64,000 bases of DNA, from sequence record OQ603353.1. One strand, given 5' to 3'. Positions 12,371 through 56,176 of the stretch are shown here, piece by piece (the stretch's first letter is position 1; each line of letters starts with the position of its first letter). The position numbers and the translations under genes are program-made. Under the pieces are notes generated by a model that ran no database searches, was not told the DNA's origin, and saw only the letters and a program-made list of their open reading frames with translations.

Positions 12371-12386
12371 CCAATCAGGCACGTCG

Positions 12387-12418
12387 AAGGGGCCGTAGGT
12401 AACACTACGGCCCTTTTC
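12387..12418 (+). terminator. Intrinsic terminator after tube gene
   Basis: AAGGGGCCGTAG-GTAACA-CTACGGCCCTTT followed by T. Confidence 0.8.
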
Positions 12419-12452
12419 TGATTCAGGCACTCCAAACCACTGAGGTAACAGC

Positions 12453-13307: not shown

Positions 13308-13358
13308 GCATCCTCAAGCAAATAACCACCACATAAGGAACCAAGAAAGGTAACGATT

Positions 13359-13739
13359 ATGCGTGAGATTGCAGCACTCAGCAAAGAGACTTTTCGTAAC
13401 TGGCCCATCGAGCGTCGGGAAGCCTATCTCAAGGCTCACCCGAACAGCAAGTTCCATTACCATGAATTGATTGAGCGCAAGGGCGTCAAGCTCCCTGCGA
13501 CCACTCCTAAGCTTGGTACAAACTGGGCTGAGCACGCACGCTATCCAGACCCGGATCACCATCGCCGCCACGCGAAGGCACATGCTATCGCGGCGGAGCA
13601 TATCAAGGAACAGGCAAAGAAGCACCGGGCTCATACCCCTGCCTACCATGATTTGCTGGAGCAGGCATCCCTGCGCCTCAAATGGAAGGAACGGCACGAA
13701 AAGCTCTACAAGAAGCTGGCCGACGATCTACTGAAGTAA
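13359..13739 (+). CDS. Small basic His-rich protein, putative internal head protein
   Basis: 126 aa; carries the F..W/L.....AYLKAHPNSKF motif shared with the Topo IB C-terminus. Confidence 0.65.
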   Translation: MREIAALSKETFRNWPIERREAYLKAHPNSKFHYHELIERKGVKLPATTPKLGTNWAEHARYPDPDHHRRHAKAHAIAAEHIKEQAKKHRAHTPAYHDLLEQASLRLKWKERHEKLYKKLADDLLK

Positions 13740-21091: not shown

Positions 21092-22024
21092 ATGGGAACG
21101 ATCACCATTTCAGTGACAGAGCCTTTGCCTACGTTCGACAGTCTGTATCAGGCAATGCTCCCGAATCTGACGTTCCCGCCAACCGGGTTCCAGTGGCCTC
21201 CCGCCCTCCCCGGCATCCCTACCATGTTCCCTTCTATCAGCTGCCCTAACATGAGTGGCGTCATGGCAATGGGCCAGCTGATGACCGAACAGCTGCTTAC
21301 GTCTGCGTTCATGATGATTAAGCCTATCTCGGAATTCCTAGGCTTGGCAATGTCTGCCATTCCCAAGATTCCCATCCTGAACATTGGCGTAGACCAGCTG
21401 CTAACTATGTCGGGTGACGATTTGATCGCGGCAGTAAAAGGCGCAATGCCTTCGCTACCCAATCTCTATTTCTCTCTCGACATACCGGACATCAACATCG
21501 TGCAGTGGCTGACGCAGCTGAAGTCTAGCTATCTAATGTCGCTAGCTGGATACTTGCAAAACATCATCAAGCAGGTGACAGACAAGATCAAAATTCCGGG
21601 CATGCCCACGTTGCCTACCATCCCCACGATGGAGGACGTGAAGCAAATGCTGATAGATCAGATTCCTCCTCCGATCAATGACCTTCGCAACGTTGACCTC
21701 AACGCGCTGTTGGCCAACATCAGCATCCCAGGCATCCCCTTCGATTTCTCGTTGCCATCGCCTTTTATCCCCAACATTTCGATGCCTGAGATTGATTTCA
21801 ACGAAATGATTTCGGGGCTGTACAATAGCATCGTCATGATGCCGATGAAGACAATGCAGGACTTCATCATGGACAAACTAAGTAGTGTGATTTCCCTCCA
21901 GCTGCCTACGCTGGTTTTGGTCATTCCCACTATTGAAATCCCCATTCCGGAAATCCCCATCCCTGTTATCCCGCCACTGCCTAGCATCCCGGACCTGCCT
22001 CCGCTCACCATTCGAGGCCCTTGA
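21092..22024 (+). CDS. Pro/Ile/Met-rich protein with three internal repeats, putative spike-tip protein
   Basis: 310 aa; directly after the spike where PAAR genes usually sit; repeats LP.P..P.IS.P.I plus amphipathic helix. Confidence 0.55.
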   Translation: MGTITISVTEPLPTFDSLYQAMLPNLTFPPTGFQWPPALPGIPTMFPSISCPNMSGVMAMGQLMTEQLLTSAFMMIKPISEFLGLAMSAIPKIPILNIGVDQLLTMSGDDLIAAVKGAMPSLPNLYFSLDIPDINIVQWLTQLKSSYLMSLAGYLQNIIKQVTDKIKIPGMPTLPTIPTMEDVKQMLIDQIPPPINDLRNVDLNALLANISIPGIPFDFSLPSPFIPNISMPEIDFNEMISGLYNSIVMMPMKTMQDFIMDKLSSVISLQLPTLVLVIPTIEIPIPEIPIPVIPPLPSIPDLPPLTIRGP

Positions 22025-22025
22025 A

Positions 22026-22967
22026 ATGCCTGTATCTAATCCACCTACCTTGTTGAGTGTCATTGCAGAGTTCGGAGGCCCTAACAATCTTGGGGCCTAT
22101 TACCGCAAAGGTCCATACGTACCTGACGGTCCTCCGCAGAATGCCAACATCAGTGATACGCCGGGCGGTCTTCGTCTCAGTCAGTTTGCGGGTGCGGTCA
22201 AGTACAATCTCAGTGCGTCCCTGAATCGCACGACCGCCAACACCAGTGGTAGTGGCAACAGCCAGTCGGGACGTGTCCTAACTCCACAGCTGATTGTTTA
22301 CCCCGTTAACGGCAGCGGCAACTACAGCTACTACTGGAACTACACCGCAGGCGTCCCTGTTAGCGGAAATACCAGTAGTACGTTCCAGCTGTACGCTGAT
22401 CTCAACAATGGTCAGAACATTTCTGGCAACGGTAACTGCGTGGTTACCGATAACGTCACTGGTCAGAATGCGATCCCTAGCTTTACGTTCTACCTAAGCT
22501 GGACGTATGAACGCCCACCCACCTGTGTTGTCATGGAAGCATACCTGCACGATGGAAAGCAGGCAGGCATGTACAACTCCAACGATCCTCTGCTGTTGGT
22601 CGATCCATACGCAAGGACTTCGGAGACGCTGAACATCGTAGATGCGCAGACCTTCACCCGAGAGTGTGTGACCTTGGTTACTGCCAATGGCTCACGCCTA
22701 ACGTGCTCCACCACTGCACCTATTCCAGTCAAAGCCGACTCGGAAACGCTGGTTCGTGCGGTGGATGCTCTAGGCCACCACGTTGCTACTACCACACGCC
22801 CTAACGACGTGATCCCATCGGTCACTTGGGATAAGGTAGTGCGTGTGCTGCCTGCTGGTGAGCGTGCTGTCCGCAATATCTACATCTACGACAAGTGCTT
22901 CTGGGCTTCGGATGACAATCGTTCGTTCATCCTCCATCACAACACGACTGGTAAGCAGATCATATGA
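22026..22967 (+). CDS. Fibre-tip adhesin A with C-terminal Hint (intein-like) domain
   Basis: ATG 22026; N-terminal SNPPTL.SV..EFGG docking domain; Hint from Cys 22524 (CVVMEAYL) to HHN 22943, followed by TTGKQII. Confidence 0.75.
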   Translation: MPVSNPPTLLSVIAEFGGPNNLGAYYRKGPYVPDGPPQNANISDTPGGLRLSQFAGAVKYNLSASLNRTTANTSGSGNSQSGRVLTPQLIVYPVNGSGNYSYYWNYTAGVPVSGNTSSTFQLYADLNNGQNISGNGNCVVTDNVTGQNAIPSFTFYLSWTYERPPTCVVMEAYLHDGKQAGMYNSNDPLLLVDPYARTSETLNIVDAQTFTRECVTLVTANGSRLTCSTTAPIPVKADSETLVRAVDALGHHVATTTRPNDVIPSVTWDKVVRVLPAGERAVRNIYIYDKCFWASDDNRSFILHHNTTGKQII

Positions 22968-23569
22968 TCGTCAACAAAGAACCACGCACCGCTACTCCGA
23001 TGAATTGGTTGCCTACGTACTACCTCAGTCGGATGTTTAACGCAGAAGAGTGCGCCACCATCATCAAGGAGTCAGAGGACTCCGGACTGTTTGTGCAAGG
23101 CCGCACCATTGGCGACAATAACGTGACTGTAACAGAGCAAGGCCGTCAGGTGGCCATTATCCGACTGGCTGGAGGTACGCTGTACGAAATGATGCGCCAA
23201 CGGATACTGGAACGGCTGCCTGACCTAAACTCCTGCTATCAGTTTGAACTGTTCGGCGCAGATGAAGTCTTCAAGGAAATCCATATCCTGAAGTACGTGG
23301 AAGGTAATTTCCACGGTGAACATTTGGACCTCGCCGGTTACGAGGAAATGTGCAACCGGAAGCTCAGCCTCATCGTCCAGTTGAATCCGGATTACGAGGG
23401 CGGTGAATTAGTCCTCTACAACTCTTATCCCGAGAAACCTCTGACCAATAGCAAGCAGGCTGGCGACGCAGTGGTGTTCCCTGCATGGATGCCGCACGAA
23501 GTAAGACCTGTTGACTACGGGACTAGATACGTTCTTGTGGTTTGGTTGCGAGGCCCTAAATTTAGATAG
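22964..23569 (+). CDS. 2OG-Fe(II) oxygenase (prolyl-hydroxylase-like), catalytic motifs intact
   Basis: HLD (HxD), RKLSLIVQL, YEGGEL, VFPAWMPHEV (distal His), GTRYVLV.W (2OG-binding Arg). Confidence 0.9.
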   Translation: MIVNKEPRTATPMNWLPTYYLSRMFNAEECATIIKESEDSGLFVQGRTIGDNNVTVTEQGRQVAIIRLAGGTLYEMMRQRILERLPDLNSCYQFELFGADEVFKEIHILKYVEGNFHGEHLDLAGYEEMCNRKLSLIVQLNPDYEGGELVLYNSYPEKPLTNSKQAGDAVVFPAWMPHEVRPVDYGTRYVLVVWLRGPKFR

Positions 23570-23579
23570 GGAGGTACTC

Positions 23580-24167
23580 ATGGCCGTATCAAACCCACCA
23601 ACATTGGTGAGCGTGCGTAACGAATTCGGTGGCAACGGAAATCTCCGTGCCTACACACGAGGCGGTGGCCTTGTTCCAGATGGGCCTGCGCAGAATGCGA
23701 ACATCAGCAAAACTCCGGACGGTTTGCGGCTTAGTCAATTTGCAGGAGCAACTAAAATCACTGCACAGTTGACCGACATTTATGCGCAGCAGTCCTACTA
23801 CGGACAATCGGGTCAAGACAACACTGCTTCTGCCACCATCCAGTTTAGTACCGATGGCAACATCTACTACACATGGGGTATGGGAGCTTTGCAGACGTAC
23901 CGATGGTTGGCTGGCGGTAATGCAAGTGATTTTGACGTAGAAGGATTTAATCAGCAGATCGCAGGTAACGGTCAAACCTCGGGCACGATGAATCGTCAGA
24001 ATTTGGGTGGTTCTCCCCGATGGTCATGTTCCGCTGCAACCCGATTTGGTTTTGTTGATTCTTCCATGTCATTTGGCTGCCGAATCTACCAAGCGGGTAC
24101 TGGTAACGTTATCGCTACAGCGAATTTCAGTATTTATGCCGCCGCCTCAGATGGTAGCATCGGATAG
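23580..24167 (+). CDS. Fibre-tip adhesin B (no Hint domain)
   Basis: ATG 23580 with GGGAGG RBS; first ~57 aa closely match the N-terminus of 22026. Confidence 0.75.
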   Translation: MAVSNPPTLVSVRNEFGGNGNLRAYTRGGGLVPDGPAQNANISKTPDGLRLSQFAGATKITAQLTDIYAQQSYYGQSGQDNTASATIQFSTDGNIYYTWGMGALQTYRWLAGGNASDFDVEGFNQQIAGNGQTSGTMNRQNLGGSPRWSCSAATRFGFVDSSMSFGCRIYQAGTGNVIATANFSIYAAASDGSIG

Positions 24168-24222
24168 CAACTCCATCTTCTAGTAACAACCAAAACGTTT
24201 GACACAACAAGGGAGAAGAAAC

Positions 24223-24900
24223 ATGTTCCAAGAAAGGGACCAAACTACAGCCAAATGGAATCCCCTCTGCCACGAACAGGTCAACTTGATTAACTCTTCG
24301 CTGATCGCGCGCCTCAAGGCGAAGGCAGATGAGTATCCGGTTAACCCTTACGGTTGTGGGTGGGATAACGGCGTTCCACTGGACCTTACTGCACCAACGG
24401 CCAGTGACGCGTCGCCAGAAGCTGCGTTGATTCACGACACCCGAACACTCATCGCAGAATGCGTCCACCGCCTAGCAGGCTTCTATCCATTCGATTTGTA
24501 TTTCAAGGATGCGGCCTTTGTTGTTCCTGCCCCACAACCTTCTTCGGTACGCTTAGTGCGACTCGCTATGGGTGCGAAGCTTAATCCGCCCCACGCTGGT
24601 ACGGCGGTTGCTCCCGGCGCCACGAATCGCATTGATCTGAATACGCATAGTCAGGCTCATCAGAAGATTCATATGATGATCCCGCTCTCTGCTTACGAAG
24701 GTAACGACGTGTTCTTCCCCTTCTTCGATCCGAACTTGCAGGAATGGAAAGACGTGTCGCCCACCATCACTAACGCACGGGCTGACTGGACAGGCATCAC
24801 GTTGTCATGGCCTGCGTGGCGGTTGTGTAGGTTCAGTCCCGTCGAGGACGGCGAAGCCTACCTCCTGCTAGTCACGTTGTACGGACCTCGCTTCCAGTAA
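24223..24900 (+). CDS. 2OG-Fe(II) oxygenase-like paralogue lacking catalytic residues
   Basis: Aligns to 22964 (YEG, WPAW, PV..G, L.V.L.GPRF) but HxD is PHAG, distal His is absent (WRLCRF), and the Arg is lost (EAYLL). Confidence 0.7.
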   Translation: MFQERDQTTAKWNPLCHEQVNLINSSLIARLKAKADEYPVNPYGCGWDNGVPLDLTAPTASDASPEAALIHDTRTLIAECVHRLAGFYPFDLYFKDAAFVVPAPQPSSVRLVRLAMGAKLNPPHAGTAVAPGATNRIDLNTHSQAHQKIHMMIPLSAYEGNDVFFPFFDPNLQEWKDVSPTITNARADWTGITLSWPAWRLCRFSPVEDGEAYLLLVTLYGPRFQ

Positions 24901-43434: not shown

Positions 43435-43529
43435 GATGACAGGCAAGCTCCCCTTGAACGTAGCGGGACGCTTCCTACGCCTATTATTTACAGTATTGCC
43501 CTGAACCGATTTCCTCATAAGAGTTGCTC

Positions 43530-44762
43530 ATGGCCACTAGAGTTTCACGGCCGAAAAGGCCATATCTACCTCCCAAGAATAATCGGTTGGTGAGTGTAGG
43601 GCAGCGTAATCTACAAGCCCTGCATCACAACAATCGACAGAACGTAATCAACGCCATCAGCGCTACCGGGTACCCCATCACCCTCTACAACACTCTGAGG
43701 ACGGGCATCAAATGTAGCTGCATGTTCGTACAGCAACCTCCGAACCAACTCCTAGATCAAGAGGGGAAGCTTTCGGAAAGCAATATGAACGCGCTTCTTG
43801 AGCCTAGCTCTGGCCTACTTGATTACGGACAAGACACGCTACCCTCTGAGAACCTGCAATCGGTTCTTCCGGTGGAGCGAATCGCGCTCAACGATACTTC
43901 GCGTCCGATCCTGAATCCATACGAGCGCGCCGAACGCACTCAATTTGACCACATCGACACATCCACTGCACAGATGGATCGGATGGTGGACGATTGGGAT
44001 ACGCTCGAAATGGATACGGAGTTTGACGCAGTGCTGACCCCTGAACGCTTCATGGCTAATCAGGGACGCGCCTGCGCCGTGTGCTTCGGTACGGGTTACG
44101 TGGGTGGGTACGAACTGCTGCATGGCACTCGACTCATCCTGACGCCTCTGCATCCACATGAGCGCTCGGACACGATTGTACTTGATCGCAACGCCAGTCC
44201 TAACACGTTTGACAGCATGACGGAAGGTTGGGTTCGTTTCCAAGTCACGCTGCCGCGAGGCACTGACTACGCCCTATTCCCCCGACTGTTCAACAACACG
44301 ATCCCCATCCCCTACAAGGAATGGAAGCTGTTGGATAACGAGGGCATTCGGATGGACCCTGCACGTATCAAGGAATTGTGCATTGGTAAACCGATCTTCA
44401 TTGAGGTACACGTAGGTAAGCTAGTGTTCACCCATCTGGAGATTCTTCTCAGCGGTCGGCCTCAGAATCAGCCGCTCAAAGCAGACAGTCCTGAAATCCA
44501 GACGATCACTGACGTGAACCGAATGGACGCCAAGACGCCTGTTACGTGGATTCTCGGTGGCACCTACAATATCTCCAAGCGCGCTGTGGTGATTGACCAC
44601 TTGCCGGGAATGAGTAGGCACTGGCGAGTCAACGACATTCAAGCCCGTCGGGATAACCTCAACTGGATTTACGAAGAGACTCTATCGAGTCGATTGGTTG
44701 ATCTGTACGAAATCACCCAACTCCTACGTCCTGTCCGTTATGAAACGGCCCCACTAGACTAA
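43530..44762 (+). CDS. Putative neck/head-closure protein with Zn-binding motif
   Basis: GIKCSC...CAVCFGTGYVGGY motif recalled from myophage neck proteins. Confidence 0.55.
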   Translation: MATRVSRPKRPYLPPKNNRLVSVGQRNLQALHHNNRQNVINAISATGYPITLYNTLRTGIKCSCMFVQQPPNQLLDQEGKLSESNMNALLEPSSGLLDYGQDTLPSENLQSVLPVERIALNDTSRPILNPYERAERTQFDHIDTSTAQMDRMVDDWDTLEMDTEFDAVLTPERFMANQGRACAVCFGTGYVGGYELLHGTRLILTPLHPHERSDTIVLDRNASPNTFDSMTEGWVRFQVTLPRGTDYALFPRLFNNTIPIPYKEWKLLDNEGIRMDPARIKELCIGKPIFIEVHVGKLVFTHLEILLSGRPQNQPLKADSPEIQTITDVNRMDAKTPVTWILGGTYNISKRAVVIDHLPGMSRHWRVNDIQARRDNLNWIYEETLSSRLVDLYEITQLLRPVRYETAPLD

Positions 44763-44770
44763 AACAACTT

Positions 44771-46078
44771 ATGAACAAGCTAAAGCGTCTCGGTCAGTCT
44801 ACGGTGACTGCTCTCACTGATTATCAGTTCCGCACTGTGGGTGAAGTGGAAAAGGTTCTGGCAAGCATGCCGCTGCCTACGATGGAAACTGCCACGTCCC
44901 TGCGTCGTCTCCCCATCTCCGACTCGAAGGAAGAAGTCCCCGTTGAGGACAACAAGCCAGAAGGTTGGACGCCGGGCCAGCGCCTGTCCACCAACAAGTT
45001 CAAGCATACTGGTGTTCCGGGTGAGCCGGTCAAGTTCAATCAGCGTGAATCGCGCGAGATTCGGGCCCTGACCAACCTGCACCACGACTTGGCGGATCAG
45101 GGCGAGAAGATCAACTCTCTCAAGGTCAACGCCCTAAATTCGTTCAAGGGTTCCAAGTTTGAATCTCAGATGGAACGCGCTCTTGGCCTGTTCGACAAGC
45201 GCGAGCGCGAACTGCTGGAACACGAACTGGACGCACACGGTCGCCTGCACGAAATCGCAGAGAATGCGATCCCCGAGGACGCCCGTGTCACGTTCAACAA
45301 GACGGTCAACCCCATCGTCAAGAATCTGGCAGGCAAGTACAAGTCGCTGACCCGTCGCTACACCGTGACTCTGCTGCCGTCGGATCAGAATGTGGTGCAG
45401 TTCCAGCTGATCGTCTCGCTGGAGAAGCTCAAGAATGACAAGGGCTTTGTTTACCCGCACTTCTACATGATTGTCACCTGTATCATCGACAATCGGAATC
45501 ATTACCACTACTACGTGGACACTTCGACGGCCAAGCCGGTTCCCAATGTGACTCCTATCGAGCACGAAAGCCGTGGCTTCTCCTTCACCAAGGCTGATGA
45601 CGGTCGCCGCCTGCTGCAATCGCACCTGCTGGTGGACGAAAGCATCGACCTGAGTATCCCGACTGAACTGCCGCGCAGTAAGGAAGAGATTGAGGGCACC
45701 AAGTTCCGTAACGACAACATCCGCACGGTCAAGGTCAACGCTGACGATCACACGATCACGTTTACCACGGATAAGGATGTTGGTCCTAAGCTGGTGGACA
45801 AGGTGGTAAAGGACATTCTCGCCGATCTTGCTGGTCTGTTCCTGAGCAAGAACCTGCATGAGAAGATGAAGCACAAGGTAACCAAGCTGAGCACCGGCGG
45901 TTACAAGGTGGTGGTGTGGGTTGGTACTCCGACTGCTCGCATCGGTAAGGAGTATCAGGCAGACAGCCATCGTCTCGACGTGTTGCAGCACGATCTGGGT
46001 CTGGATGAAACTCAGGTCAATCAGATTCGCCGCATGCTGCGTGGCCGCTCGCAGATTCGTATTCCGGATCATGAGTAA
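44771..46078 (+). CDS. Virion structural protein, function unknown
   Basis: 435 aa, biased codons, in late operon. Confidence 0.65.
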   Translation: MNKLKRLGQSTVTALTDYQFRTVGEVEKVLASMPLPTMETATSLRRLPISDSKEEVPVEDNKPEGWTPGQRLSTNKFKHTGVPGEPVKFNQRESREIRALTNLHHDLADQGEKINSLKVNALNSFKGSKFESQMERALGLFDKRERELLEHELDAHGRLHEIAENAIPEDARVTFNKTVNPIVKNLAGKYKSLTRRYTVTLLPSDQNVVQFQLIVSLEKLKNDKGFVYPHFYMIVTCIIDNRNHYHYYVDTSTAKPVPNVTPIEHESRGFSFTKADDGRRLLQSHLLVDESIDLSIPTELPRSKEEIEGTKFRNDNIRTVKVNADDHTITFTTDKDVGPKLVDKVVKDILADLAGLFLSKNLHEKMKHKVTKLSTGGYKVVVWVGTPTARIGKEYQADSHRLDVLQHDLGLDETQVNQIRRMLRGRSQIRIPDHE

Positions 46079-47309
46079 GCTTCGGCAGGTGCTGGTAGTG
46101 CAGGCGGACAAGGGCAACAACGTAGATGACCCCAACATTACTCAGGACAGCACGGCGCTGGACAATCACGAACTGGCAATCTTCGGATTCGGCAAGAAGG
46201 CAGCGCATGAACGCAAGCGCACTGCTTTCTACAAGCACCAAGACTCCGAAGTCGAGCACCTGAAAAATCACGCACGCTCTACCGGCTTCAACGGACACAT
46301 CATGCGCGGTGGCAAGTTCACCAAACGATACATCGCGCACATCAAGAAAGTGAATGACCCTGCCATCGCCCACCGGGTCATTCAATTCCATCACAAGAAC
46401 CAGCTTGGTGTGAAGCATCGCCTTGGCTATCATCATGGCTTTACTACCGCAGTAGTAGACGCCGGACCTGATCCGCACACGGATGACTTCCACGATCTAA
46501 ACGCGGAGCATTCCATGACTGAGAAGACTGAAAACGCTGCACTGTGGAACGGTGAAGCAACGCACACGATGGGTGACAACCTTGGCGAGATTATGGACGG
46601 TCGCCAGTTTGTTGGTACCTTGCTTGACTACGAGTTCAACGAAGTGCCCGTGTGGTATCAGCCGCGCAACAACACGCACTTCCGAGGTTCCTCCACACTG
46701 GTGATCCCTGATCGCACGGTGGCCTACGGTAACTGGAAGGTTCTGTCTACCAACGGCAAATTCCACGTGCGCAAGCTGCGTGCTTTCCTCGACAAGCAGC
46801 TGCCGCCCGACCGTCGTACGCCTGACTACAAGGCACTCAAGATCGAAATCAATCCGTCGGAGCTGGTCAAGTCCGTGGACACCACGATCCAGCCCAAGAC
46901 TCAGGTGGACCTGACGGGTGGCACGATGAAGGTCACTCAGGATCGCCGCCTGTGGGACGATGAAACTTCGGTACTGGCGAACGAACAGATCGACATGCTG
47001 CTCACTCAGATGACGGCGGCCGGCTTCAATTTTGTACGTAGCTACTACAGCGTACACTACGCGTTCTACAACGCCAAGCTGGATAACCACGTTCTGTTCA
47101 ACCTCACCACCTCTCGGACCAAGAGCATTCAGGAAATCGAGAATGCACTGAACGCAATCAGCTGGAACTTCCAGCCGTTGCCGTTCCAGTGGCCTGCGTA
47201 CAACTACACCGCTCCCACGTGGCGCGCTATGGTGGAGTTGGATAACGGGCGTCGGCTTGTGATGGCATTGGACTACGCCAAGAGCACTTTGGTGTTCGAC
47301 CTCCTGTAA
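46071..47309 (+). CDS. Modular hypothetical protein (acidic leader, basic His-rich part, globular C-terminus)
   Basis: ATG 46071 overlaps the upstream stop; track start 45921 probably too long. Confidence 0.65.
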   Translation: MSKLRQVLVVQADKGNNVDDPNITQDSTALDNHELAIFGFGKKAAHERKRTAFYKHQDSEVEHLKNHARSTGFNGHIMRGGKFTKRYIAHIKKVNDPAIAHRVIQFHHKNQLGVKHRLGYHHGFTTAVVDAGPDPHTDDFHDLNAEHSMTEKTENAALWNGEATHTMGDNLGEIMDGRQFVGTLLDYEFNEVPVWYQPRNNTHFRGSSTLVIPDRTVAYGNWKVLSTNGKFHVRKLRAFLDKQLPPDRRTPDYKALKIEINPSELVKSVDTTIQPKTQVDLTGGTMKVTQDRRLWDDETSVLANEQIDMLLTQMTAAGFNFVRSYYSVHYAFYNAKLDNHVLFNLTTSRTKSIQEIENALNAISWNFQPLPFQWPAYNYTAPTWRAMVELDNGRRLVMALDYAKSTLVFDLL

Positions 47310-47319
47310 CGGAACTTAT

Positions 47320-49263
47320 ATGGACAGGGAAAAAGAGCACCCATTCGACTATCATCTTCGGATGACGAATCTTGCTGCCAAGAAGGCGCACGAAGCTACG
47401 GCCCAAGGGCAGCACAACGAAGCGCACAAGTGGCATCTGAAAGTCCTGCATCACATAGGCGAAGCGCGCAAGCACAAGCCACCCACCATTCCACCTTCCA
47501 TTGCCTCCGAGCTCGCTAAAATGGCACATAATTCCAAGATGCACACCGCATCTGCGAAGACTTCAACCCTACAGCATGCTCATCGCATCGTTAATGACCA
47601 TGCTTCGGATATCCACGGTGGTGATTCGCACAGCGACGTTTCTAAGCGTCGCTTCACTCGTTATCAGCTCCGCGCTGGTGACCTTGAGAACGCTATGCAC
47701 GAACTCAAGACCGCTGGTTTCAAGACTGCTACCAACCATGCCCCGAGAGCCAAGCATCACTTGGTAAACGGACGGACGCATGTTCTCATCAGTCATCCTG
47801 AAGGCAGGCACGAAACTCACATCGTCAACGTTCAGCACGCAAGTGTTGATTCTTCTGAGAACTCCAACATGGCACTATCTGCGCAGGCACTCGCCAACCT
47901 CAAGTCTATGAATGAAACTGCCCGTGAGGATCATGAAGATCATGAGCCCTACGGCATGGAGAACAAGCCCCGTCCTAAGAAGACTACTGCAACCACGGAA
48001 TCTCCTGCCGAACTCGCGGCGTATGGCACCTATCGGGGTTATCACCCGCATCGCGCCCTACATGACGAAGCGCGCCATCTGTTGGAATCCCGAGGCCACC
48101 ACGCTAGTCATAGCTCTGACCGCCTAGGTGCTCTCTCCGGGGTTAGGGGCATGCGTGTTCAACATCAAGTTGGCAGTACCGCAACTAAACTGCCCCGCCC
48201 CGAACAGCACGCCGAGCACATGGCTGCCACGCAAGAACTCCACAAGCTTGTTCAGAAGCATGGCTTCCAGCATACCTCTGGCGGTACATATCATCATCCT
48301 GAGACGGGCGCAAAGGTTCATATCCATACCCCTCATGTAGGCAAGACGGGTGATAGTTATCTGGATCACTTCGATAATCATACCAATATGAGCATCACCC
48401 ACAGCCTGAGTAAGCGAAAGGCTACGGCGGGTATGGAAGAAGAAGTCGCCCTGTTCAGCAAGGGTCCGAAGTTCGGCAAGAACTGGAAGGATCATGAGAG
48501 CGTGGACGATCACAACCATCACATGCGCCATGCAGGTAAGCATCTTGCGGAGTACAACAAGTACGCTGCCAAGGTGAACGAAGCACGCGCCGCTGGTCGG
48601 GGCGACGAGGCTAACAAGTTGGCAGAGCGTGCTCAGCGCCACCTCGGGTGGAATCGCAACCACCTCGCACGCGCTCGCAAAATCTACCACAAGTCGATGG
48701 CCGCATTTGAGGCGGAAATTGCTTCCCTGACTGTTGAAGCAGCCACTGGTTCTCAAAAGGCAGCAGACGCACGCGCTGACGCACGTAGGATGGAAAAGTT
48801 CCACGGGTATCACCGCCGCGCCAACGACGCTCACTCCAAGCTTGGTCTTCCGGGTGATCACGCCCACGCTCACCGTAGTGCTTCCAAGGACTACGGTACT
48901 GCCTTGCTGAATCATGTTGGTGTGCACGCCCCCGGCACCATTGATAGTAGTCCGGGAGAACACAAGGTAGGTACCCATCGTCACATCAAGGGCTCCTCTG
49001 CTTCGCACATCAGCCTGCACTCTGTCCATAACAAGTTGACGGACCTAGGCTACGAGCACAAGGGCAAGGTAAATCATGATGACAAGGAACTGGAACATCA
49101 TGAGTACCACCACCCGGAGCACAAGTTCACGGTGTCCCTGTATAAGCGTTCTACGCACGACGGCGGCAAGGCGCATCACAGTGTTGGCGCTATCGTACAC
49201 CATGCACCTAATGGATACGAACACCATGCCAAGGGCCTGACTGCTACTAAGCCCACCACGTAA
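47320..49263 (+). CDS. Extremely His-rich modular protein, putative internal head polyprotein
   Basis: 647 aa; repeated His-rich modules separated by short acidic/Ala linkers. Confidence 0.7.
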   Translation: MDREKEHPFDYHLRMTNLAAKKAHEATAQGQHNEAHKWHLKVLHHIGEARKHKPPTIPPSIASELAKMAHNSKMHTASAKTSTLQHAHRIVNDHASDIHGGDSHSDVSKRRFTRYQLRAGDLENAMHELKTAGFKTATNHAPRAKHHLVNGRTHVLISHPEGRHETHIVNVQHASVDSSENSNMALSAQALANLKSMNETAREDHEDHEPYGMENKPRPKKTTATTESPAELAAYGTYRGYHPHRALHDEARHLLESRGHHASHSSDRLGALSGVRGMRVQHQVGSTATKLPRPEQHAEHMAATQELHKLVQKHGFQHTSGGTYHHPETGAKVHIHTPHVGKTGDSYLDHFDNHTNMSITHSLSKRKATAGMEEEVALFSKGPKFGKNWKDHESVDDHNHHMRHAGKHLAEYNKYAAKVNEARAAGRGDEANKLAERAQRHLGWNRNHLARARKIYHKSMAAFEAEIASLTVEAATGSQKAADARADARRMEKFHGYHRRANDAHSKLGLPGDHAHAHRSASKDYGTALLNHVGVHAPGTIDSSPGEHKVGTHRHIKGSSASHISLHSVHNKLTDLGYEHKGKVNHDDKELEHHEYHHPEHKFTVSLYKRSTHDGGKAHHSVGAIVHHAPNGYEHHAKGLTATKPTT

Positions 49264-50102
49264 TGATCGGTGAACGTCTCGCGTACCCAACTGGATATGG
49301 TTTCCAGTTGGGTATTCGCACAAGTGAACGTACCATGTGGTCAGATGACGGGCGCACTGTTCCTCTGGATCATAAGCCGCAGGTAGTTGCCAATCCTATC
49401 AACTGCCCGCATCCAATCCCCGAGGATCAATTGATCCCTGCTGATTGGCGCAATCTGCTCACGGCCAAGCTTCGGTGTCCTGCTTTTGGTACGCAACTTC
49501 TGTACGGCATGTGGGCGACCATCGCTCACCTGAGCAACTTCAAAGCTGCACAGACGCCGTTGATCGAAATCACGGATGATCTACCTGCGCATAACCTTGG
49601 CAACTTCAACATTGTCCACGGTCGGCCTCGCATACAGGTAGCCAAGTCGCGCATCTACACTTACGCGGCGCTGGCGTCGATTATCGCTCACGAAACTGCG
49701 CACCAAATTCAACGCACCGTGTTCAACTCTTCGGAAGAGTCCCACGGCGAACTGTTCGACAAGATTTGTAGGGAGATTACCTCCCGGACTGGCATTGCGA
49801 TCCATCGTAGTGTCGATTTTGTTGGGGACAGGTCATTCGCTGTTAGCGATCCCCTGCCTAGCAAGTACCCCATTTACTACATCATCGCTGATGGGCGGGT
49901 ATCGTACACGGATAGTCATAGTGAAGTGACGGAAATAATCACTGCTCCTGACGCTATTGATGCAGACCTCCAAGTCTACAAGAGCCACGACATTAGCTTG
50001 ATTGACTGGCTCCGTCCTGAAACTGACCTGAAACGATTTACCCGAGTTCGCCCGGACGTGCTAAAGGTCATCGCACACAGAGGCACACGCATTTACCCAT
50101 GA
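49263..50102 (+). CDS. SprT-like zinc metalloprotease
   Basis: IIAHETAH (HExxH) followed by HGELF, the SprT signature. Confidence 0.82.
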   Translation: MIGERLAYPTGYGFQLGIRTSERTMWSDDGRTVPLDHKPQVVANPINCPHPIPEDQLIPADWRNLLTAKLRCPAFGTQLLYGMWATIAHLSNFKAAQTPLIEITDDLPAHNLGNFNIVHGRPRIQVAKSRIYTYAALASIIAHETAHQIQRTVFNSSEESHGELFDKICREITSRTGIAIHRSVDFVGDRSFAVSDPLPSKYPIYYIIADGRVSYTDSHSEVTEIITAPDAIDADLQVYKSHDISLIDWLRPETDLKRFTRVRPDVLKVIAHRGTRIYP

Positions 50103-52105
50103 GCAACATTCACGATTTCATCAAGACCCAGCTGCTGGCTGCTGCCCATTTCCAAGAAACGCTGGATGCGGGTGGCAAGAAGTGGCTCAAGAGTGGTGGT
50201 ATCGCCGACGGTCGGAAGTTCCTAGAGGAACGCAAGTTCCCTAAATCGGTCATCAAGGCATACGATACTGCCATGAAGAACGTCCTTGCAGGTAAGGACT
50301 TTGAGGAAGACGTTGATCCGCATTTGCAGGAAGTACAGAATGCAGTGAAGGAGCGTCTGCCCAAGCTGACCAAGGACACTTCTATTCCGATCGCAGACAT
50401 CAAGACTCTGAAAGACGTGAGTCTGATCCTGCGCACTGAATCGGACTCTGCATGGGCACGTGTCGAGAAGGACATTGGCCGACTGCGTGACGAAGACCTC
50501 AACCGCATCATCGCTCCTGCTGTGGAATCCTCCAGCAAGTACGTCAAAGACCTCAAGGCAGCGTTCAAGAAACTGACGGGCAAAGATGGTACTGACTTCC
50601 GTGACCTAGAAGAACTGGCTGATCTTGATACTGATGAGTATCGGGAAGCAGTCAAGAAGATCATGGGCAAGAAGCCGGCTGCTGCTAAGGAATTCACCAA
50701 GGCACGCAGCGAGTACACCAAGGCCAGCAAGAAGGCCCACATGGCTCATGTACGTGCTTCCGGCAGTCACCTGATGGACGTGGAGACGGCCAAGAAACAC
50801 CTTGAGTCTAAGGGCTTCCGTCACTCCATCCCTGAAGGCTTCAAGGGCAAGCTTGATGAAAACGGACGTATCCACACTGAGCATGGTGAACCCATCGCCG
50901 GTGGTATCTCCGGCACCGTCAAGATGAATCCGAAGTACGAGAAGGGTTCTAGCGTCAATGTCCTGACCTACTATCCTCCGGGTGCGAAGACGCCGCAGTA
51001 CCTGTTCACCGCAGGTGCCAAGGCTAACGCCATCCAGAAGAAGAGTCAGAAGGTTGACGAACTGTCCGACAAGATTGGTGACCTGCGTAAGAAGTGGGGC
51101 GCTGACCTGAACAGTAAGGATCCGAGCACTCGCATTGCTGCTGCCATTCTCGAAGCCTGCTACCACACGTCTGCACGTATCGGTAATCTGAGCAACAAGA
51201 ATGATGGCATGACGACCTTGAAGGGTAGGAATGTCAAGGTCAACGGGGATACGGTCACCTTCAGCTACACTGGCAAATCGGACCAGCAGCAGAAGCACGT
51301 CATGAAGGGCGACGATCCCATTTCCAAGAAGGCTGTGGAAATCATCAAGGCCCTCAAGGAAAACGCGAAGCCTGACGACCTGCTTTTCCGCAACAAGAAT
51401 CGCCGCGTCGGTAGCCGTCAGGTCAACGATTACTTCACCTCCCTCGGTTCCCCCACCACGGTGCACAAGATGCGCCACGTTCGCGGCAACGCGATCATGA
51501 AGGAAGAACTGAAGAAGAAGCCGAAGACTGACGACGACAAGAAGATCACGGCCTTCCTGACTGCGGCTCTGGCCAAGGTTGGTGAGCAGCTGGGTCACTT
51601 CAACAAGGGCGAGGTCACCTTCGCCACTGCCCTGCAATCCTACGTCTCTCCGTCAATCGTTGAGAAGTATTATGACAGCTACAACATTCGTCCGCCCGCA
51701 CGCATTCAGAAGGTTATTGACCAAGCCAAGAAGGACAATGGTGAACCGACTACTAAGTTGCAGGACTTGCCGCATCACGGCGACGTGGCGGAAAAGCCTA
51801 AGGTACCTCGGGCGGTTAAGCGTGTAGCAAAGGAAGAAAAGGAAGCACCGAAGCCGCGTGTAGTGAAAAAGGTGGAGAAGCCTGCACCGAAGCCGCTGCG
51901 TCAAGTCAAGAAGGTGGAGAAGCCTGAACCCAAGGAACGCAAGCCCACACGCACGGTCAAGCACATTGAGCTGGGTCCCCTGTCTGCACAGCCTGTGAAG
52001 ACGCCAGCTTGGTTCCAGAAGTTGAGCGGTAACGCACAGCGGACTTACATCAAGGAAAATCCGCACACCAAGTTGAAGCCCACCAAGCTGCCGGGCTCGA
52101 AGTAA
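50099..52105 (+). CDS. DNA topoisomerase type IB with N- and C-terminal extensions
   Basis: SARIGN (Arg 51176), GMTTL, FSYTGKS (Lys 51275), HKMR (Arg 51473), LGH (51596), QSYVSP (Tyr 51641); Lys/Pro-rich tail. Confidence 0.88.
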   Translation: MSNIHDFIKTQLLAAAHFQETLDAGGKKWLKSGGIADGRKFLEERKFPKSVIKAYDTAMKNVLAGKDFEEDVDPHLQEVQNAVKERLPKLTKDTSIPIADIKTLKDVSLILRTESDSAWARVEKDIGRLRDEDLNRIIAPAVESSSKYVKDLKAAFKKLTGKDGTDFRDLEELADLDTDEYREAVKKIMGKKPAAAKEFTKARSEYTKASKKAHMAHVRASGSHLMDVETAKKHLESKGFRHSIPEGFKGKLDENGRIHTEHGEPIAGGISGTVKMNPKYEKGSSVNVLTYYPPGAKTPQYLFTAGAKANAIQKKSQKVDELSDKIGDLRKKWGADLNSKDPSTRIAAAILEACYHTSARIGNLSNKNDGMTTLKGRNVKVNGDTVTFSYTGKSDQQQKHVMKGDDPISKKAVEIIKALKENAKPDDLLFRNKNRRVGSRQVNDYFTSLGSPTTVHKMRHVRGNAIMKEELKKKPKTDDDKKITAFLTAALAKVGEQLGHFNKGEVTFATALQSYVSPSIVEKYYDSYNIRPPARIQKVIDQAKKDNGEPTTKLQDLPHHGDVAEKPKVPRAVKRVAKEEKEAPKPRVVKKVEKPAPKPLRQVKKVEKPEPKERKPTRTVKHIELGPLSAQPVKTPAWFQKLSGNAQRTYIKENPHTKLKPTKLPGSK

Positions 52106-52112
52106 GTAATAC

Positions 52113-52143
52113 CCCACCGACTAACCCTCGGTGGGTTCTGTCT
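52113..52143 (+). terminator. Hairpin/terminator after Topo IB
   Basis: CCCACCGA-CTAACCC-TCGGTGGG then TTCTGTCT. Confidence 0.55.
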
Positions 52144-52165
52144 TTGCTTTGTAGGAGAATCAACA

Positions 52166-53125
52166 ATGCCTGTTCGTATGCTGCAAGGTATCGCCAAGAA
52201 AGCGGGTACCACGCACGACCACGCAGAGAAGATTTGGGACGATAGCAAGAAAATCGTTGATAAGAAGTTCTCGGAAGATGACCCGAGCTACTACCCATAC
52301 CTGACAGGGATCGTCAAACGTCGCCTAGGCTTGTCGAAAGGTGAGAAGGCGATGTTCGACTCCCAAGACTCTACTAACGAGGAAGCTGACGTGGAAGAAA
52401 CCGCAAAGAAGAATTGGAGTCAGGAAGTAACGGACAACGAAAAGTTCCATCCAAAGGAAGGTATCTTCAAGCAGAGCTCGGAGAAGATCGCCAAGTATCT
52501 GCTTAGTAAGGGTAAAGGAAAGGCCATGAGCCGCCTCACCTTCTACATCAACCGGGCTGGCAAGTCGCTGAGTCCCGAAGATCGTAATCGTCTTGAGCGT
52601 GCCAAGAAGATTATCTCCAATGCTACTGGCAAGGAAACGGCCAAGGCGCACGACTATACCCCGCAGTACAAGACGCCTGAACAAATCGACAAGGGCCTGC
52701 GTATTACGGACAAGTTCTTCCGCACCATCTACTTCCCCAAGCTGGATAGCGACGGCAAGATCGTTGGCTACGATGAAGAACAAGTCAGTTCGGTGGACTT
52801 CGTGTTCCTGCAATCTGATCCCGACACTGATCCTGTGTGGACTGATCCCCACACCAGTGCGGTTGTCAAGGCGAGCACCCTGCATCACTACATGGTTCAC
52901 CACGCAACCCCTAACGCACAGCGCCGTCGTCGGAACCTGCTGCAAGCTTACGCATCGGCAACCAACTTCAATGGCCCGATCATGAGCAACGGTTCTGTCA
53001 CCGCTGAGTTCATGTGTCACATGCACGGCCATAGCAGCATTGCTATGGCCGAAGTAAGCCGCTCCTTTGAGTACCACAACCGAGTTCATGCTGGCGTGGA
53101 TGACGATCTGATTGCCTCCAGCTGA
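52166..53125 (+). CDS. Three-module protein containing a DUF3175-like domain
   Basis: KKNWSQEVT..GIFK..IA..AMSRLTFYINRAGKSL..RLERAK (52406-52608) matches DUF3175 as I recall it. Confidence 0.7.
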   Translation: MPVRMLQGIAKKAGTTHDHAEKIWDDSKKIVDKKFSEDDPSYYPYLTGIVKRRLGLSKGEKAMFDSQDSTNEEADVEETAKKNWSQEVTDNEKFHPKEGIFKQSSEKIAKYLLSKGKGKAMSRLTFYINRAGKSLSPEDRNRLERAKKIISNATGKETAKAHDYTPQYKTPEQIDKGLRITDKFFRTIYFPKLDSDGKIVGYDEEQVSSVDFVFLQSDPDTDPVWTDPHTSAVVKASTLHHYMVHHATPNAQRRRRNLLQAYASATNFNGPIMSNGSVTAEFMCHMHGHSSIAMAEVSRSFEYHNRVHAGVDDDLIASS

Positions 53126-53170
53126 TACGGATGAATCCTCATAGTAGGGAGTGGCCAACCTAACTTTTTA

Positions 53171-53557
53171 ATGAGGAGACCGATGTTCGACCTGTCCATG
53201 ATCGAAACGCTGAACAACTTCCTTGAGACGCCGACCGCTGCGCGCGCAATCGCCTTCGGTATGCTTATCTCTTGGGGTGGTACGCAACTCGTCAAGTTCA
53301 ATCCGCTGGTTCGGAAGCTGCTGAATCATCTGCCGCCCGAAATGGGCCGGACGGTTGTGCAAGCAATCGCTTTCCTGCTGGCATTCATTCCTACGTTCCT
53401 GCTGTGGCCGGGTATGGGTACGGTCAAGGTACTGGGTAGCATTGTTGTAGGCACGTGGTCCCCCAAGGCGTATCAAAAGGCGACGGTGGTTCTCTACCAC
53501 TTCTTCCCTTACCTTGAGCCCAAGCTGAGTGCCACCCCTGTTCCGAAGGAGAAGTAA
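53171..53557 (+). CDS. Membrane protein, holin candidate
   Basis: 128 aa, two to three hydrophobic segments, charged C-terminus, ends before an intergenic gap. Confidence 0.5.
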   Translation: MRRPMFDLSMIETLNNFLETPTAARAIAFGMLISWGGTQLVKFNPLVRKLLNHLPPEMGRTVVQAIAFLLAFIPTFLLWPGMGTVKVLGSIVVGTWSPKAYQKATVVLYHFFPYLEPKLSATPVPKEK

Positions 53558-53622
53558 TCCTACTTGGAAGGTAGGAGTAGCAACAACATGGATGTTCCAC
53601 CTACTACTAATGGAGATTCGCC

Positions 53623-53877
53623 ATGTATAGCATCACCAATCTCGGCTTTGAACGTCTCGTTGTTGGCAGCCTGGGTTTCGAGCCGCAGGTTGCCCACCCG
53701 ATCAGTGATCTGGACTTCGCCCGCCTGTCGGTAGAGGAAAAGTCCCTGATTAACGCCAAGGTTGCCGAGGGCACCTTCTCCGTGGTGCACACCGCTGAAA
53801 AGCAGCTGGTCTTCTCTCCGGCTCCCCTCTCGGCTGGCCTCGGTCCCATCGTTGCTGCGGAAAATCCGCAGGGCTGA
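53623..53877 (+). CDS. Small structural protein
   Basis: 84 aa, GGAG RBS; N-terminus resembles that of 53901. Confidence 0.6.
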   Translation: MYSITNLGFERLVVGSLGFEPQVAHPISDLDFARLSVEEKSLINAKVAEGTFSVVHTAEKQLVFSPAPLSAGLGPIVAAENPQG

Positions 53878-53900
53878 TCCACACTTAGAGGTTCTCCAGT

Positions 53901-54698
53901 ATGTATGTGTTTACCAACACCTCAGCTAATCAGATGACGTTCGGCGACCTGACGCTGGCCCCGAACGCCACCACTGAATTCCCTGACGATCGGGTGGCTG
54001 CCCTGAGCACCCACAACCTGAAAGCGCTCAACGATTTTGCCAACGGCAATCCGCTGATCCTGAAGGTCGAGTATCAGGCTTCGGTTCCGCCGGTCACCAT
54101 CGGTCCTGTATCCGCCGCTCCTGCCATTTCTACTCCGTTCGGTAACAAACTGATGCAGGCTGCTGATGCAGATGCTGCTAAGGAACTGCTCGGGGAAGGT
54201 CAAGGTAGTGGCTATACGTTGCCTGTCGCTACGGGCTCGGTCCTTGGTGGCGTCAAGATCGGTGCGGGCCTTAGTGCTACCGCCGATGGCACCCTGAGTC
54301 GCAGCGCCCTTGTTGCCGGAGACATTCCAGATTTGGACGCCGCCAAGATCGCCTCCGGCACTCTGGCGGTTGCGCGTTTGGGTACTGGCACTCCAAGTGC
54401 TGCTAACGTGCTTTTGGGTTCGGGCGCTTTTGGCGTACCTCCGACTGCTACTAAGGCAACCGCTCTGGCTACGGGCCGTACCTTCACTCTGAGTGGCGGG
54501 GCTTCCGGTACCACCGCCTCTCCGTTCGATGGCTCTGCTAACGCCACCCTCAACGTTACGCTGGCTACTCCGACAAGTGCTCTCCGTGGCGGTGTCCTCC
54601 AGCAGGCCGCCATTGCTGACTTGACCGCCGCTCCTACCCAGCAGGATTTCAACGCCCTGCTGGCAGCCCTGCGTGCAGCCTCGGTAATCGCTTCCTGA
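53901..54698 (+). CDS. Head fibre/decoration protein
   Basis: YTLPVAT..LGGVKIG.GL repeat and C-terminal APTQQDFNALLAALRAASVIA head-fibre motif. Confidence 0.72.
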   Translation: MYVFTNTSANQMTFGDLTLAPNATTEFPDDRVAALSTHNLKALNDFANGNPLILKVEYQASVPPVTIGPVSAAPAISTPFGNKLMQAADADAAKELLGEGQGSGYTLPVATGSVLGGVKIGAGLSATADGTLSRSALVAGDIPDLDAAKIASGTLAVARLGTGTPSAANVLLGSGAFGVPPTATKATALATGRTFTLSGGASGTTASPFDGSANATLNVTLATPTSALRGGVLQQAAIADLTAAPTQQDFNALLAALRAASVIAS

Positions 54699-54781
54699 CA
54701 ACAACCGGGCCAAGGACGGCCCACTAGTCGGGTAAACCTTTCAAATTAGCCGGGTAAGGGTGCCTCAAATACGGTACTTGG

Positions 54782-54793
54782 CAGCTAATTTTA
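54782..54793 (+). promoter_or_regulatory. Candidate late promoter motif (copy 3)
   Basis: CAGCTAATTTTA, intergenic, upstream of the adaptor gene. Confidence 0.5.
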
Positions 54794-54829
54794 CTGTGAA
54801 GGCGAGGGCTATTCCTCCGTGCTTTTCAG

Positions 54830-56176
54830 GTGCAGGGATTCACCACTTCCTATGGCCTCAACTCAATGTCAGCCTTTCCTAATGTAATCAATGACGCTGT
54901 TGTCGGACAACAAGTCGTAGCCAACGCGAGCTTCTTCATTGCTCCTAACACGGATACGACCGGATTGATTGCCCGGTACAGTATCGTAGACGCAGACGAT
55001 GCGGAGTGGACTTCCGGCATCGCCACAAACATTGTGGTGTCGCCTCTAGGTTCGCGCTCCAAGGTGAATGCCTCGGCTTCGGTCGATATTCCCTACACGC
55101 TACCTGTCGAGTTCTACGGTACCAAGTATCAACTGGCGTGGACCCTTGAAACTCAAGATGGTACATTCGTTTCCAGTTATATCGAGTCGTTCAACGTCAA
55201 GCCTGTCATGCAGGGTGGCGTGTTCGGCGTACCGGACATCGTAGAAGCAGCAACAGACAAAACGATTCTCAAAGCGGTACTGCCTTCCAACGATCAAGTG
55301 GAAGTGCTGGTGTTCAAGGGCAACGCCTGCCTTAACAACGGCAGCCCTGTCATCCTGCAACCGGGTGACAAGGTATTCAACGGTACGCAGTATCTGGGTA
55401 GTTTCAACCATGCTACCCTGCGTAACCCCGGAGCGTCCCCTCCCCCGAATTCTGCGTTGGGGATCAACCAGCCGTCCCCTGCTCTCATACAAGCGATGGC
55501 AGCAGCGCGCGGCTTGAACCCCGCCGACATTACAGCCAGCAATGAATCGCTGACTCCTTCACTTGAGCCCTATAACTTGTGGTGGCAATACAAGGATGAG
55601 GATTCGGGTGAGGTAGTTGTCGAGGATAGCTATCTGTATCATGTGACTCCAATGATCCTACAGGCAGGACGGGAGCTACAACAGTTTGTGAACCGCGCTA
55701 ACAACGAAGGCCGGTTGCAGGAACTGACCATCGACCTGAACGTAATCATTCACTTCCTGAAGCAAGGCGGCGACTACTTCAACAGTGTCGGTATGCCAAC
55801 CTTCTTTGACTTCACCTGTGCTAATGGACCCTTCCGTCAATTCTGGGTCATGTGCAGTGCAGTGCGTCTCCTCCGTAGTCAGTACCTTCTGGAGGCCGAA
55901 CGTAGTATGGTGATGCAGGGCCAGAGCGTTACACTGGACATTGACATTACTGCGTACTACGAAACTGCGGCATCGGATGCCCAAGCATTCGTTGACCAAT
56001 ACTTGCCGGAGTTCAAGCAGAATATCACACGCAAGGGTCTGCTGACCGGCGACGGTGACTACGGCAACGGCGGCATCATTTCGAGGAACGTGGGTGCTAT
56101 GGGCATTCAGTTGTCCGCGACCACCAACCTGTTCTTCGGTTGGCGTAATCAGTACGCACGCCGTGGCCTGTTCTAA
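54830..56176 (+). CDS. Putative head-tail adaptor/neck protein
   Basis: C-terminal FLKQGGDYFNSVG..FWVMCSAVRLLRSQYLLEAE..GQSVTLDID helical adaptor-like domain; start may be ATG 54866. Confidence 0.55.
   Translation: MQGFTTSYGLNSMSAFPNVINDAVVGQQVVANASFFIAPNTDTTGLIARYSIVDADDAEWTSGIATNIVVSPLGSRSKVNASASVDIPYTLPVEFYGTKYQLAWTLETQDGTFVSSYIESFNVKPVMQGGVFGVPDIVEAATDKTILKAVLPSNDQVEVLVFKGNACLNNGSPVILQPGDKVFNGTQYLGSFNHATLRNPGASPPPNSALGINQPSPALIQAMAAARGLNPADITASNESLTPSLEPYNLWWQYKDEDSGEVVVEDSYLYHVTPMILQAGRELQQFVNRANNEGRLQELTIDLNVIIHFLKQGGDYFNSVGMPTFFDFTCANGPFRQFWVMCSAVRLLRSQYLLEAERSMVMQGQSVTLDIDITAYYETAASDAQAFVDQYLPEFKQNITRKGLLTGDGDYGNGGIISRNVGAMGIQLSATTNLFFGWRNQYARRGLF

Follow-up and report, generated by a model that had tools for sequence, protein, structure and literature searches.

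A mobile terminal peptide on a jumbo-phage type IB topoisomerase and a small tail-module protein as a possible docking tag

The window analysed here is the whole stretch of 64,000 nucleotides from sequence record OQ603353.1. It has 100% identity to Xanthomonas phage Ep026 and Erwinia phage Ep032 and 99.3-99.9% identity to the PhiXhv-12/15/16 jumbo phages (~227-229 kb), and its gene calls are those of the annotated PhiXhv-16 record. It holds a head-tail structural module (major head protein, sheath, tube, baseplate), a lysis cassette, three opposite-strand genes, including a resolvase, and a second co-directional block that reaches a connector gene and goes further (Table 1). A head maturation protease gene is also present in the phage genome. 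This report concerns a short conserved peptide, hereafter the element, which appears at the C-terminal end of a topoisomerase IB (Topo IB) encoded in the second block and at the N-terminus of a small, basic, His-rich protein encoded in the tail module.

The larger of the two carriers may be taken, from its sequence, as a type IB topoisomerase with a catalytic core and an active-site tyrosine. The core matched Pfam PF01028 (Topoisom_I) at residues 307-515 (E 1.6e-19, 70.6 bits against a cut-off of 23.7); 2f4q and 6z01 are solved relatives, with the S-Y of the active-site region aligned, and S514 and Y515, the conserved S-Y in the alignment to 2f4q, are invariant in the Topo IB relatives. The family phrog_23460 covers residues 53-546 only, and the 120-residue extension of the protein is unique among cultured phage Topo IB. 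Most of this extension is a linker that differs considerably among the three tailed relatives, with lengths of 74, 42 and 57 residues, 30-50% identity and 19-33 gap columns; its composition is 18-31% K+R and 16-21% P, with a net charge of +4 to +13. The peptide at the end matched the motif profile with an E of 4e-14 and is predicted to form helices at residues 637-640 and 644-653, with a predicted local distance difference test score (pLDDT) of 60-75 in a model that was built on three sequences and had a mean pLDDT of 56.

The small protein was modelled by AlphaFold2 with a pLDDT of 87.6 and a predicted template-modelling score of 0.74. No Pfam or PHROG match was obtained for it or for its relatives P0011, P0014, P0015 and P0016 (labels of the P00xx type denote relatives from a protein collection, and those of the L0xx type loci or contigs of relatives), and a fold search with the small protein returned nothing significant, the best Foldseek E being 2.3 in PDB and 0.35 in BFVD. 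The position of its gene is constant in every phage examined. In five phages the order is a tube-like gene, the small protein, phrog_13792, a tiny gene and a gene of ~850-920 aa, the last of which encodes a lytic domain (Peptidase_M23 or Glucosaminidase) in two relatives.

The sequence-only reading of this DNA had aligned 22 residues of the Topo IB C-terminus with 22 residues near the N-terminus of the small protein. Translation reproduced both peptides at the positions given (Table 1), and the carriers were indeed otherwise unrelated, with nothing else in common by BLASTP and a distance of 38.5 kb between them. Taken as a pair, the peptides have a BLOSUM62 score of 26 over 22 columns, with five identities. 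This is at chance level, as 81% of the shuffles of the small protein reached 26 against Topo IB, and 7,844 windows among the 64 proteins of the 64-kb window scored at least 26; BLASTP of Topo IB against the small protein did not list the register of the two peptides. Because the pairwise score, the shuffles and BLASTP were all non-significant, we dropped the pairwise similarity as a basis for a claim of homology.

The evidence for the element comes instead from the protein families. A large protein collection supplied five diverged small-protein relatives, and for Topo IB two relatives with the tail. In the six small-protein relatives (identity down to 48%), F12, W15, P16, E21, Y23, L24, H27, P28 and S30 are invariant. 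Among the three tailed Topo IB relatives, identity over the last 28 residues is 61-79%, with no gap at all, and this end is at least as conserved as the core (50-74%); behind the 22 residues originally aligned lie ten more, six of which are invariant in the relatives. The element is the best-conserved segment in both families. When the two families were compared by hhalign, the sole match was the originally proposed register (P = 0.003), and the predicted secondary structure is alike in both proteins: a short helix, a longer helix and a turn. The direct family-to-family profiles were weak, with an E of 0.15 in one direction and no match in the other, and a profile made from the small protein family alone missed the Topo IB tail. 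When 1.84 billion representative proteins were searched exhaustively by profile, only ten matches came out. Two metagenomic proteins among them, P0011 and P0014, carry a Topo-type peptide ahead of the His-rich helical domain of the small protein, so that their link to the small protein runs through a different domain. Out of 4,994 six-frame segments of the 229 kb genome, a profile built from these two proteins only placed the Topo IB tail at the top (E 0.002), with the small protein next (E 0.036). DNA-pattern scans that fixed the core alone also found new carriers, and the upstream aromatic positions matched in them as well. We conclude from these sequence comparisons that the element is homologous across its carriers.

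The element spans ~31 columns, and 21 distinct instances were collected. Numbered as in the small protein, the columns hold an aromatic residue at F12 (21/21), Trp at W15 (14/21), Tyr at Y23 (20/21), an aliphatic residue at L24 (21/21), Lys at K25 (18/21), His at H27 (19/21), Pro at P28 (20/21), Ser or Thr at S30 (21/21), Lys at K31 (16/21) and an aromatic residue at F32 (17/21). The Tyr column falls at residue 23-33 of 15 proteins; in the three Topo IB it is 14-18 residues away from the C-terminus, and in three other proteins it is internal. Besides the small-protein family (element N-terminal) and the three Topo IB (element near the C-terminus, behind a disordered K/P-rich linker), the carriers are an intact 378-aa ADP-ribosyltransferase-domain protein whose gene adjoins the Topo gene (L015/L016); NUDIX hydrolases with a G/S-rich linker ahead of the element (L060, L066-69, L068); a K/E-rich 324-aa protein (L008); a 334-aa protein with a hydrophobic stretch (L009/L020, and also Erwinia phages pEa_SNUABM_5, Yoloswag and Alexandra and Yersinia phage fHe-Yen9-02); and proteins of 163 aa (L059, L065), 241 aa (L073) and 285 aa (L072). 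In the ADP-ribosyltransferase carrier, the first 52 residues correspond to residues 1-69 of the small-protein family (hhalign probability 93%, E 3e-7). The element is usually flanked by a variable basic or G/S-rich linker, and basic stretches lie behind it in L008, L009, L059 and L073.

Every carrier contig has core genes in common with PhiXhv-16, which places the carriers in one broad jumbo-myovirus lineage. Several carriers are known from metagenomic contigs alone, and most carrier contigs cover 4-20 kb, so that the copies per genome outside PhiXhv-16 are lower bounds. A scan of the whole PhiXhv-16 genome (229 kb, six frames) with a motif profile, as the sequence-only reading had suggested, found the two copies only, the next match having an E of ~1. 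Among 37 matches of the core decapeptide in 185,579 cellular genomes the full element was absent; all of them were inside unrelated enzymes, without the upstream half. Searches for loci in viral contigs found nothing with the whole small-protein alignment and L020 as the sole addition with subtype alignments, and a type II pattern scan returned only L009, which was already known.

Orthologues differ in whether they carry the element. The Topo IB of PaBG, Lu11, phiRSL1 and Motura and that of P0010 are untagged and end straight after the catalytic domain; a search of the large protein collection with the whole Topo IB (8,000 candidates scored) added one untagged relative. In the four phages whose neighbourhoods were read, the untagged Topo IB has thymidylate kinase, NUDIX, single-stranded DNA-binding protein or glycosylase genes as neighbours. 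The tagged Topo IB sits in a late, co-directional structural block that ends at the connector gene. The phrog_21298 gene and the connector gene that bound this block also flank the tagged 324-aa protein in L008, and the tagged NUDIX protein of L060 lies between connector and DUF3175 genes. The L009/L020 carrier adjoins a prohead protease gene and an acidic scaffold-like gene; an orthologue of this 334-aa carrier has the element in pEa_SNUABM_5 and is without it in Y3. The element is thus modular, has been gained and lost, is tethered by a disordered linker and is confined to one phage lineage. That the shared peptide is a portable tag, as was proposed from the sequence, is borne out by its presence at either end of unrelated proteins and by its gain and loss among orthologues.

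What such a tag does can be suggested only tentatively. A conserved helical peptide on a variable disordered linker, present at either end of unrelated enzymes and subject to gain and loss, would be expected of a tethered binding peptide. We tentatively favour the element as a docking peptide that recruits enzymes to a component of virion assembly. It is possible, if rather doubtful, that in this way the tag loads a changing set of enzymes into the particle and has them delivered along with the DNA, the place of loading being perhaps the tail or the neck and not the head. Binding by the element, a virion component as its partner and delivery of the cargo are all inferred. In such a scheme the element, made up of a short helix that bears an aromatic residue, a second helix with Tyr-aliphatic-Lys at its end and a turn of the form His-Pro-x-Ser/Thr-Lys-aromatic, would have had its original home at the N-terminus of the small tail-module protein, and would have been copied from there onto the ends of accessory enzymes on flexible, mostly basic linkers. 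The element would bind one putative partner in the assembling virion, the same one that the small protein binds. Tagged enzymes, which would be Topo IB here and an ADP-ribosyltransferase and NUDIX hydrolases in relatives, would be made late, built into the particles at a candidate site in the head, the neck or the tail lumen, and would enter the next cell with the DNA.

A virion partner is favoured because the original carrier is a tail-module protein, because the gene of the tagged Topo IB has shifted to a structural block, because one carrier adjoins a prohead protease and a scaffold-like gene, and because the lineage, through PaBG, carries a nucleic-acid enzyme in its particles: a 221-kDa RuvB-helicase-like protein is present in PaBG particles (PMC7412058, Table 1). 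Several points weigh against this explanation. The untagged Topo IB of PaBG is missing from the 14 abundant virion bands of a low-sensitivity survey (PMC7412058), and no published virion proteome of tag-bearing phages was found in the PhiXhv paper or in the open literature on Y3, Yoloswag and the Dickeya phages. Two copies per genome are fewer than expected for a general packaging signal, and the L059 carrier adjoins replication helicase genes and no structural genes. The basic linkers and the DNA-acting cargo are equally compatible with a DNA-binding role. In the small protein the element belongs to a confidently predicted fold and does not look like a cleavable leader, and on that model it may be a structural piece instead of a free binding peptide.

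The sequence-only reading had named the peptide a possible capsid-targeting signal after the example of T4. The idea of a tag stands, and capsid targeting is just one possibility for it; as to targeting of the T4 kind, none of the features that could be compared (length and position, copy number) was found. In T4 all internal head proteins carry the capsid-targeting sequence at the N-terminus as a propeptide of 10-20 residues (Mullaney and Black 1996, summarised in PMC5694885); it binds to the core of the scaffold, and the prohead protease cuts it away (PMC5694885). There is a likeness in that a short transferable peptide is common to otherwise unrelated phage proteins, and the ADP-ribosyltransferase cargo found here is the same kind of enzyme as T4 Alt (PMC5694885). 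However, the present element has ~31 residues and is also C-terminal (three Topo IB) or internal (three proteins), it occurs in two copies per genome (229 kb, six frames) instead of on a whole set of internal proteins, and it belongs to a tail-module protein in which it is predicted to be folded.

Other packaging systems offer partial parallels. Encapsulin cargo-loading peptides are short and extended and dock on the inner face of an HK97-fold shell, and the cargo genes lie beside the shell gene. The Topo IB copy resembles them in its arrangement of an enzyme, a flexible linker of 42-74 residues and a conserved terminal peptide, but the element is predicted to be helical, is longer and is mostly N-terminal, and the major head protein gene lies 45 kb away from that of Topo IB instead of beside it. 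Minor head proteins of the SPP1 gp7/Mu F kind may be fused to ADP-ribosyltransferase domains, and in this manner phages put such enzymes into particles via a virion-binding module. Their module is a whole portal-associated domain, whereas the present tag is a 30-residue peptide; in the L015 ADP-ribosyltransferase, the match to phrog_595 covers the catalytic part and the tag lies outside it. The payload signals of the Photorhabdus virulence cassette (PVC), an extracellular contractile injection system, comprise ~50 N-terminal residues with 'rare conserved residues' and tolerate point changes (PMC9054023, PMC11495950), and loading depends on the AAA ATPase Pvc15 (PMC9054023, PMC11495950). There, too, a terminal tag loads diverse payloads into a contractile device, one that is like a phage tail, and a site in the tail lumen is conceivable for the present element because it is tied to a tail-module protein. 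The PVC signals differ from it in their conservation, as ~10 columns of the element are conserved at 80-100% across the 21 instances.

Several other explanations have to be considered. The simplest, that two short peptides resemble each other by chance and have no common origin or function, is very improbable. It would agree with the pairwise score, with the failure of the small-protein-only profile to find the Topo IB tail and with the independent occurrence of the core decapeptide within unrelated cellular enzymes, but it conflicts with the bridging proteins P0011 and P0014, with the single hhalign match in exactly this register, with the finding that each peptide is the most conserved part of its protein, with the same predicted helix pattern in both and with the agreement of new carriers at unconstrained positions. 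An accessory module for binding nucleic acid, in which the peptide and the basic linker raise the affinity of the enzymes for DNA and the small protein is a histone-like DNA binder, seems unlikely to us. The element stands nearly always beside K/R/P-rich segments (the Topo linker and L008, L009, L059 and L073), a topoisomerase is among the carriers, and the small protein has a pI of 9.9. However, it is mainly aromatic, aliphatic, His and Pro residues that are conserved, and the basic linker as such is not; NUDIX and ADP-ribosyltransferase carriers have no obvious need for tethering to DNA; the Topo IB relatives work without a tail; and there is no fold or family match to a known DNA-binding domain. 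The fixed place of the small protein in the tail module would also be left unexplained.

Docking could instead bring the enzymes to a hub outside the virion, either a replication or transcription complex of the phage or a host protein, with nothing packaged; we consider this, too, improbable. A modular tethered architecture suits any protein-protein docking, and the L059 carrier lies among helicase and polymerase genes. The NUDIX carriers also have a weak match to the adaptor domain EAD9 (effector-associated domain 9) behind the element; it lies right behind it at residues 321-362 in L060 and 242-284 in L068, and its scores of 20.6 and 22.6 bits are below the Pfam cut-off of 25. This match may be a mere helical, K/E-rich resemblance. 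Such a hub is at odds with the archetypal carrier, which is in the tail module of every phage examined, and with the move of the tagged Topo IB from a DNA-metabolism neighbourhood into a structural block; the absence of the tag from cellular genomes indicates that no cellular protein uses the same dock, and is silent on a host partner. A further possibility, which could implement either docking model and which we regard as quite unlikely, starts from the assumption that the element normally packs in cis against the His-rich domain, as in the small protein, so that the 647-aa protein encoded near Topo IB would offer its His-rich domain to the Topo IB tail as a docking site in trans. The gene content of this genome agrees with the idea: the element is an orphan once (in Topo IB), the domain is an orphan once (in the 647-aa protein), and both are together once (in the small protein). 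Element and domain are also combined in P0011, P0014 and P0015; P0012 has the domain by itself and P0016 has five of them in tandem, as would be expected of a multivalent receptor; and L015 has a weak orphan-domain match (E 8e-4). Against this, a scan of viral contigs with a narrow pattern found the domain on no orphan-element contig (L008, L009/L020, L059, L060), no domain match lay within 6-10 kb of the carriers in these same loci, and ~100 residues separate element and domain in P0014.

The His-rich helical domain deserves description in its own right. The 647-aa protein matched the small protein by BLASTP (E 1e-7) and the domain profile (E 7e-10), and the motif profile of the element had no match anywhere in it. 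In an alignment of eight sequences, a Gly, two Trp and five His are invariant, and the invariance of the His suggests that the domain binds metal. It stands alone in the 77-aa P0012 and is repeated five times in tandem in P0016, and no Pfam, PHROG or fold match was found for it.

Should the tag send proteins into the particle, tailed phages would have a second packaging address defined by sequence, alongside the capsid-targeting sequence of T4. It would explain how jumbo phages swap the enzymes with which they enter the cell, and the small tail-module protein would be named as a part of the packaging pathway. In bacteria it would be new for a phage to bring in a type IB topoisomerase with its genome. 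With a partner outside the virion, the element would still be a conserved, mobile module for interaction, as yet undescribed, as is the His-rich helical domain. The element and this domain, both absent from Pfam and PHROGs, connect several 'hypothetical' genes of the phage group.

Table 1. Positions of the features in the 64-kb window
Feature	Position	Strand	Remarks
Topo IB gene	50099-52105	+	668 aa: N-terminal helical region, core ~304-546, linker, tag
Disordered K/P-rich linker of Topo IB	51737-51997	+	~residues 547-633; pLDDT 26-37, no secondary structure
Conserved C-terminal peptide of Topo IB	51998-52102	+	residues 634-668; originally aligned 22 residues plus conserved basic end
Originally aligned 22 residues in Topo IB	52010-52075	+	residues 638-659 of 668 aa; by translation
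Originally aligned 22 residues in small protein	13389-13454	+	residues 11-32 of 126 aa; by translation
Small basic His-rich helical protein	13359-13739	+	126 aa, pI 9.9, 13 His; element and His-rich domain
N-terminal element copy in small protein	13371-13463	+	residues 5-35; predicted helices 9-13 and 17-26, then turn; pLDDT 85-88
His-rich helical domain, small protein	13485-13715	+	~residues 43-119
His-rich helical domain, 647-aa protein	48445-48765	+	~residues 376-482
647-aa protein	47320-49263	+	two genes upstream of Topo IB; His-rich domain, element absent
Co-directional block holding Topo IB	43524-56176	+	bounds: phrog_21298 gene 43524-44762 and head-tail connector gene 54830-56176; PHROG matches
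Major head protein gene	~4473-5570		
SprT-like gene	49263-50102	+	sub-threshold match; directly upstream of Topo IB; stop overlaps Topo IB start (50099)
Spacer behind Topo IB	52106-52165		60 nt
Inverted repeat	52113-52135		right behind Topo IB stop
DUF3175 protein	52166-53125	+	319 aa
Fibre-like protein	53901-54698	+	265 aa; just upstream of connector gene
Tandem gene-pair duplication	21933-24900	+	first genes 22026-22967 and 23580-24167; second genes 22964-23569 and 24223-24900

Some features around the Topo IB gene may be added. The gene directly upstream has a sub-threshold match to SprT-like metalloproteases (Pfam PF10263, E 1.8e-5, 25.0 bits against a cut-off of 25.6). SprT/Spartan proteases clear DNA-protein cross-links of the kind that topoisomerases can leave. 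The SprT-like/Topo IB pair also occurs in L015, and the SprT-like gene of PaBG is five genes away from its Topo IB. Downstream, a perfect 8-bp G+C-rich inverted repeat could form a terminator-like hairpin on either strand; a promoter/terminator scan of 40-57 kb gave no signal above shuffles (18 against 15.6 expected). The slot behind Topo IB is variable, since the window holds just the short spacer there, compared with two genes in L015, where a 96-aa gene and the 378-aa ADP-ribosyltransferase-domain gene (Pfam PF03496, E 6e-13) lie at 11935-13354 between Topo IB and a DUF3175 gene. In the window the next gene encodes a protein with a DUF3175 domain (Pfam PF11373, E 4e-11); DUF3175 genes adjoin tagged proteins again in L015 and L060, and the C-terminal part of the window's protein has a short block in common with the protein at ~46005-47309 (22-mer score 52). 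The 265-aa protein further downstream has head-fibre/tail-fibre-like matches (Pfam PF11133, E 3.5e-8, and several PHROGs), and its presence inside the block supports the structural character of the latter.

Two minor observations concern other places. In L060, five genes within 10 kb, by the connector gene (1874-5938, minus strand), encode a common short leader (Met, 4-6 residues, Ile-[Ala/Thr]-[Ala/Thr]-Arg-Leu), which was not found in the phage of the window or in the other loci checked and could represent another N-terminal address signal of that phage, distinct from the element. In the window, a pair of genes is duplicated in tandem (Table 1): the first genes of the two pairs share a near-identical 22-mer (score 98), and the second genes are both 2OG-Fe(II)-oxygenase-like (score 51).

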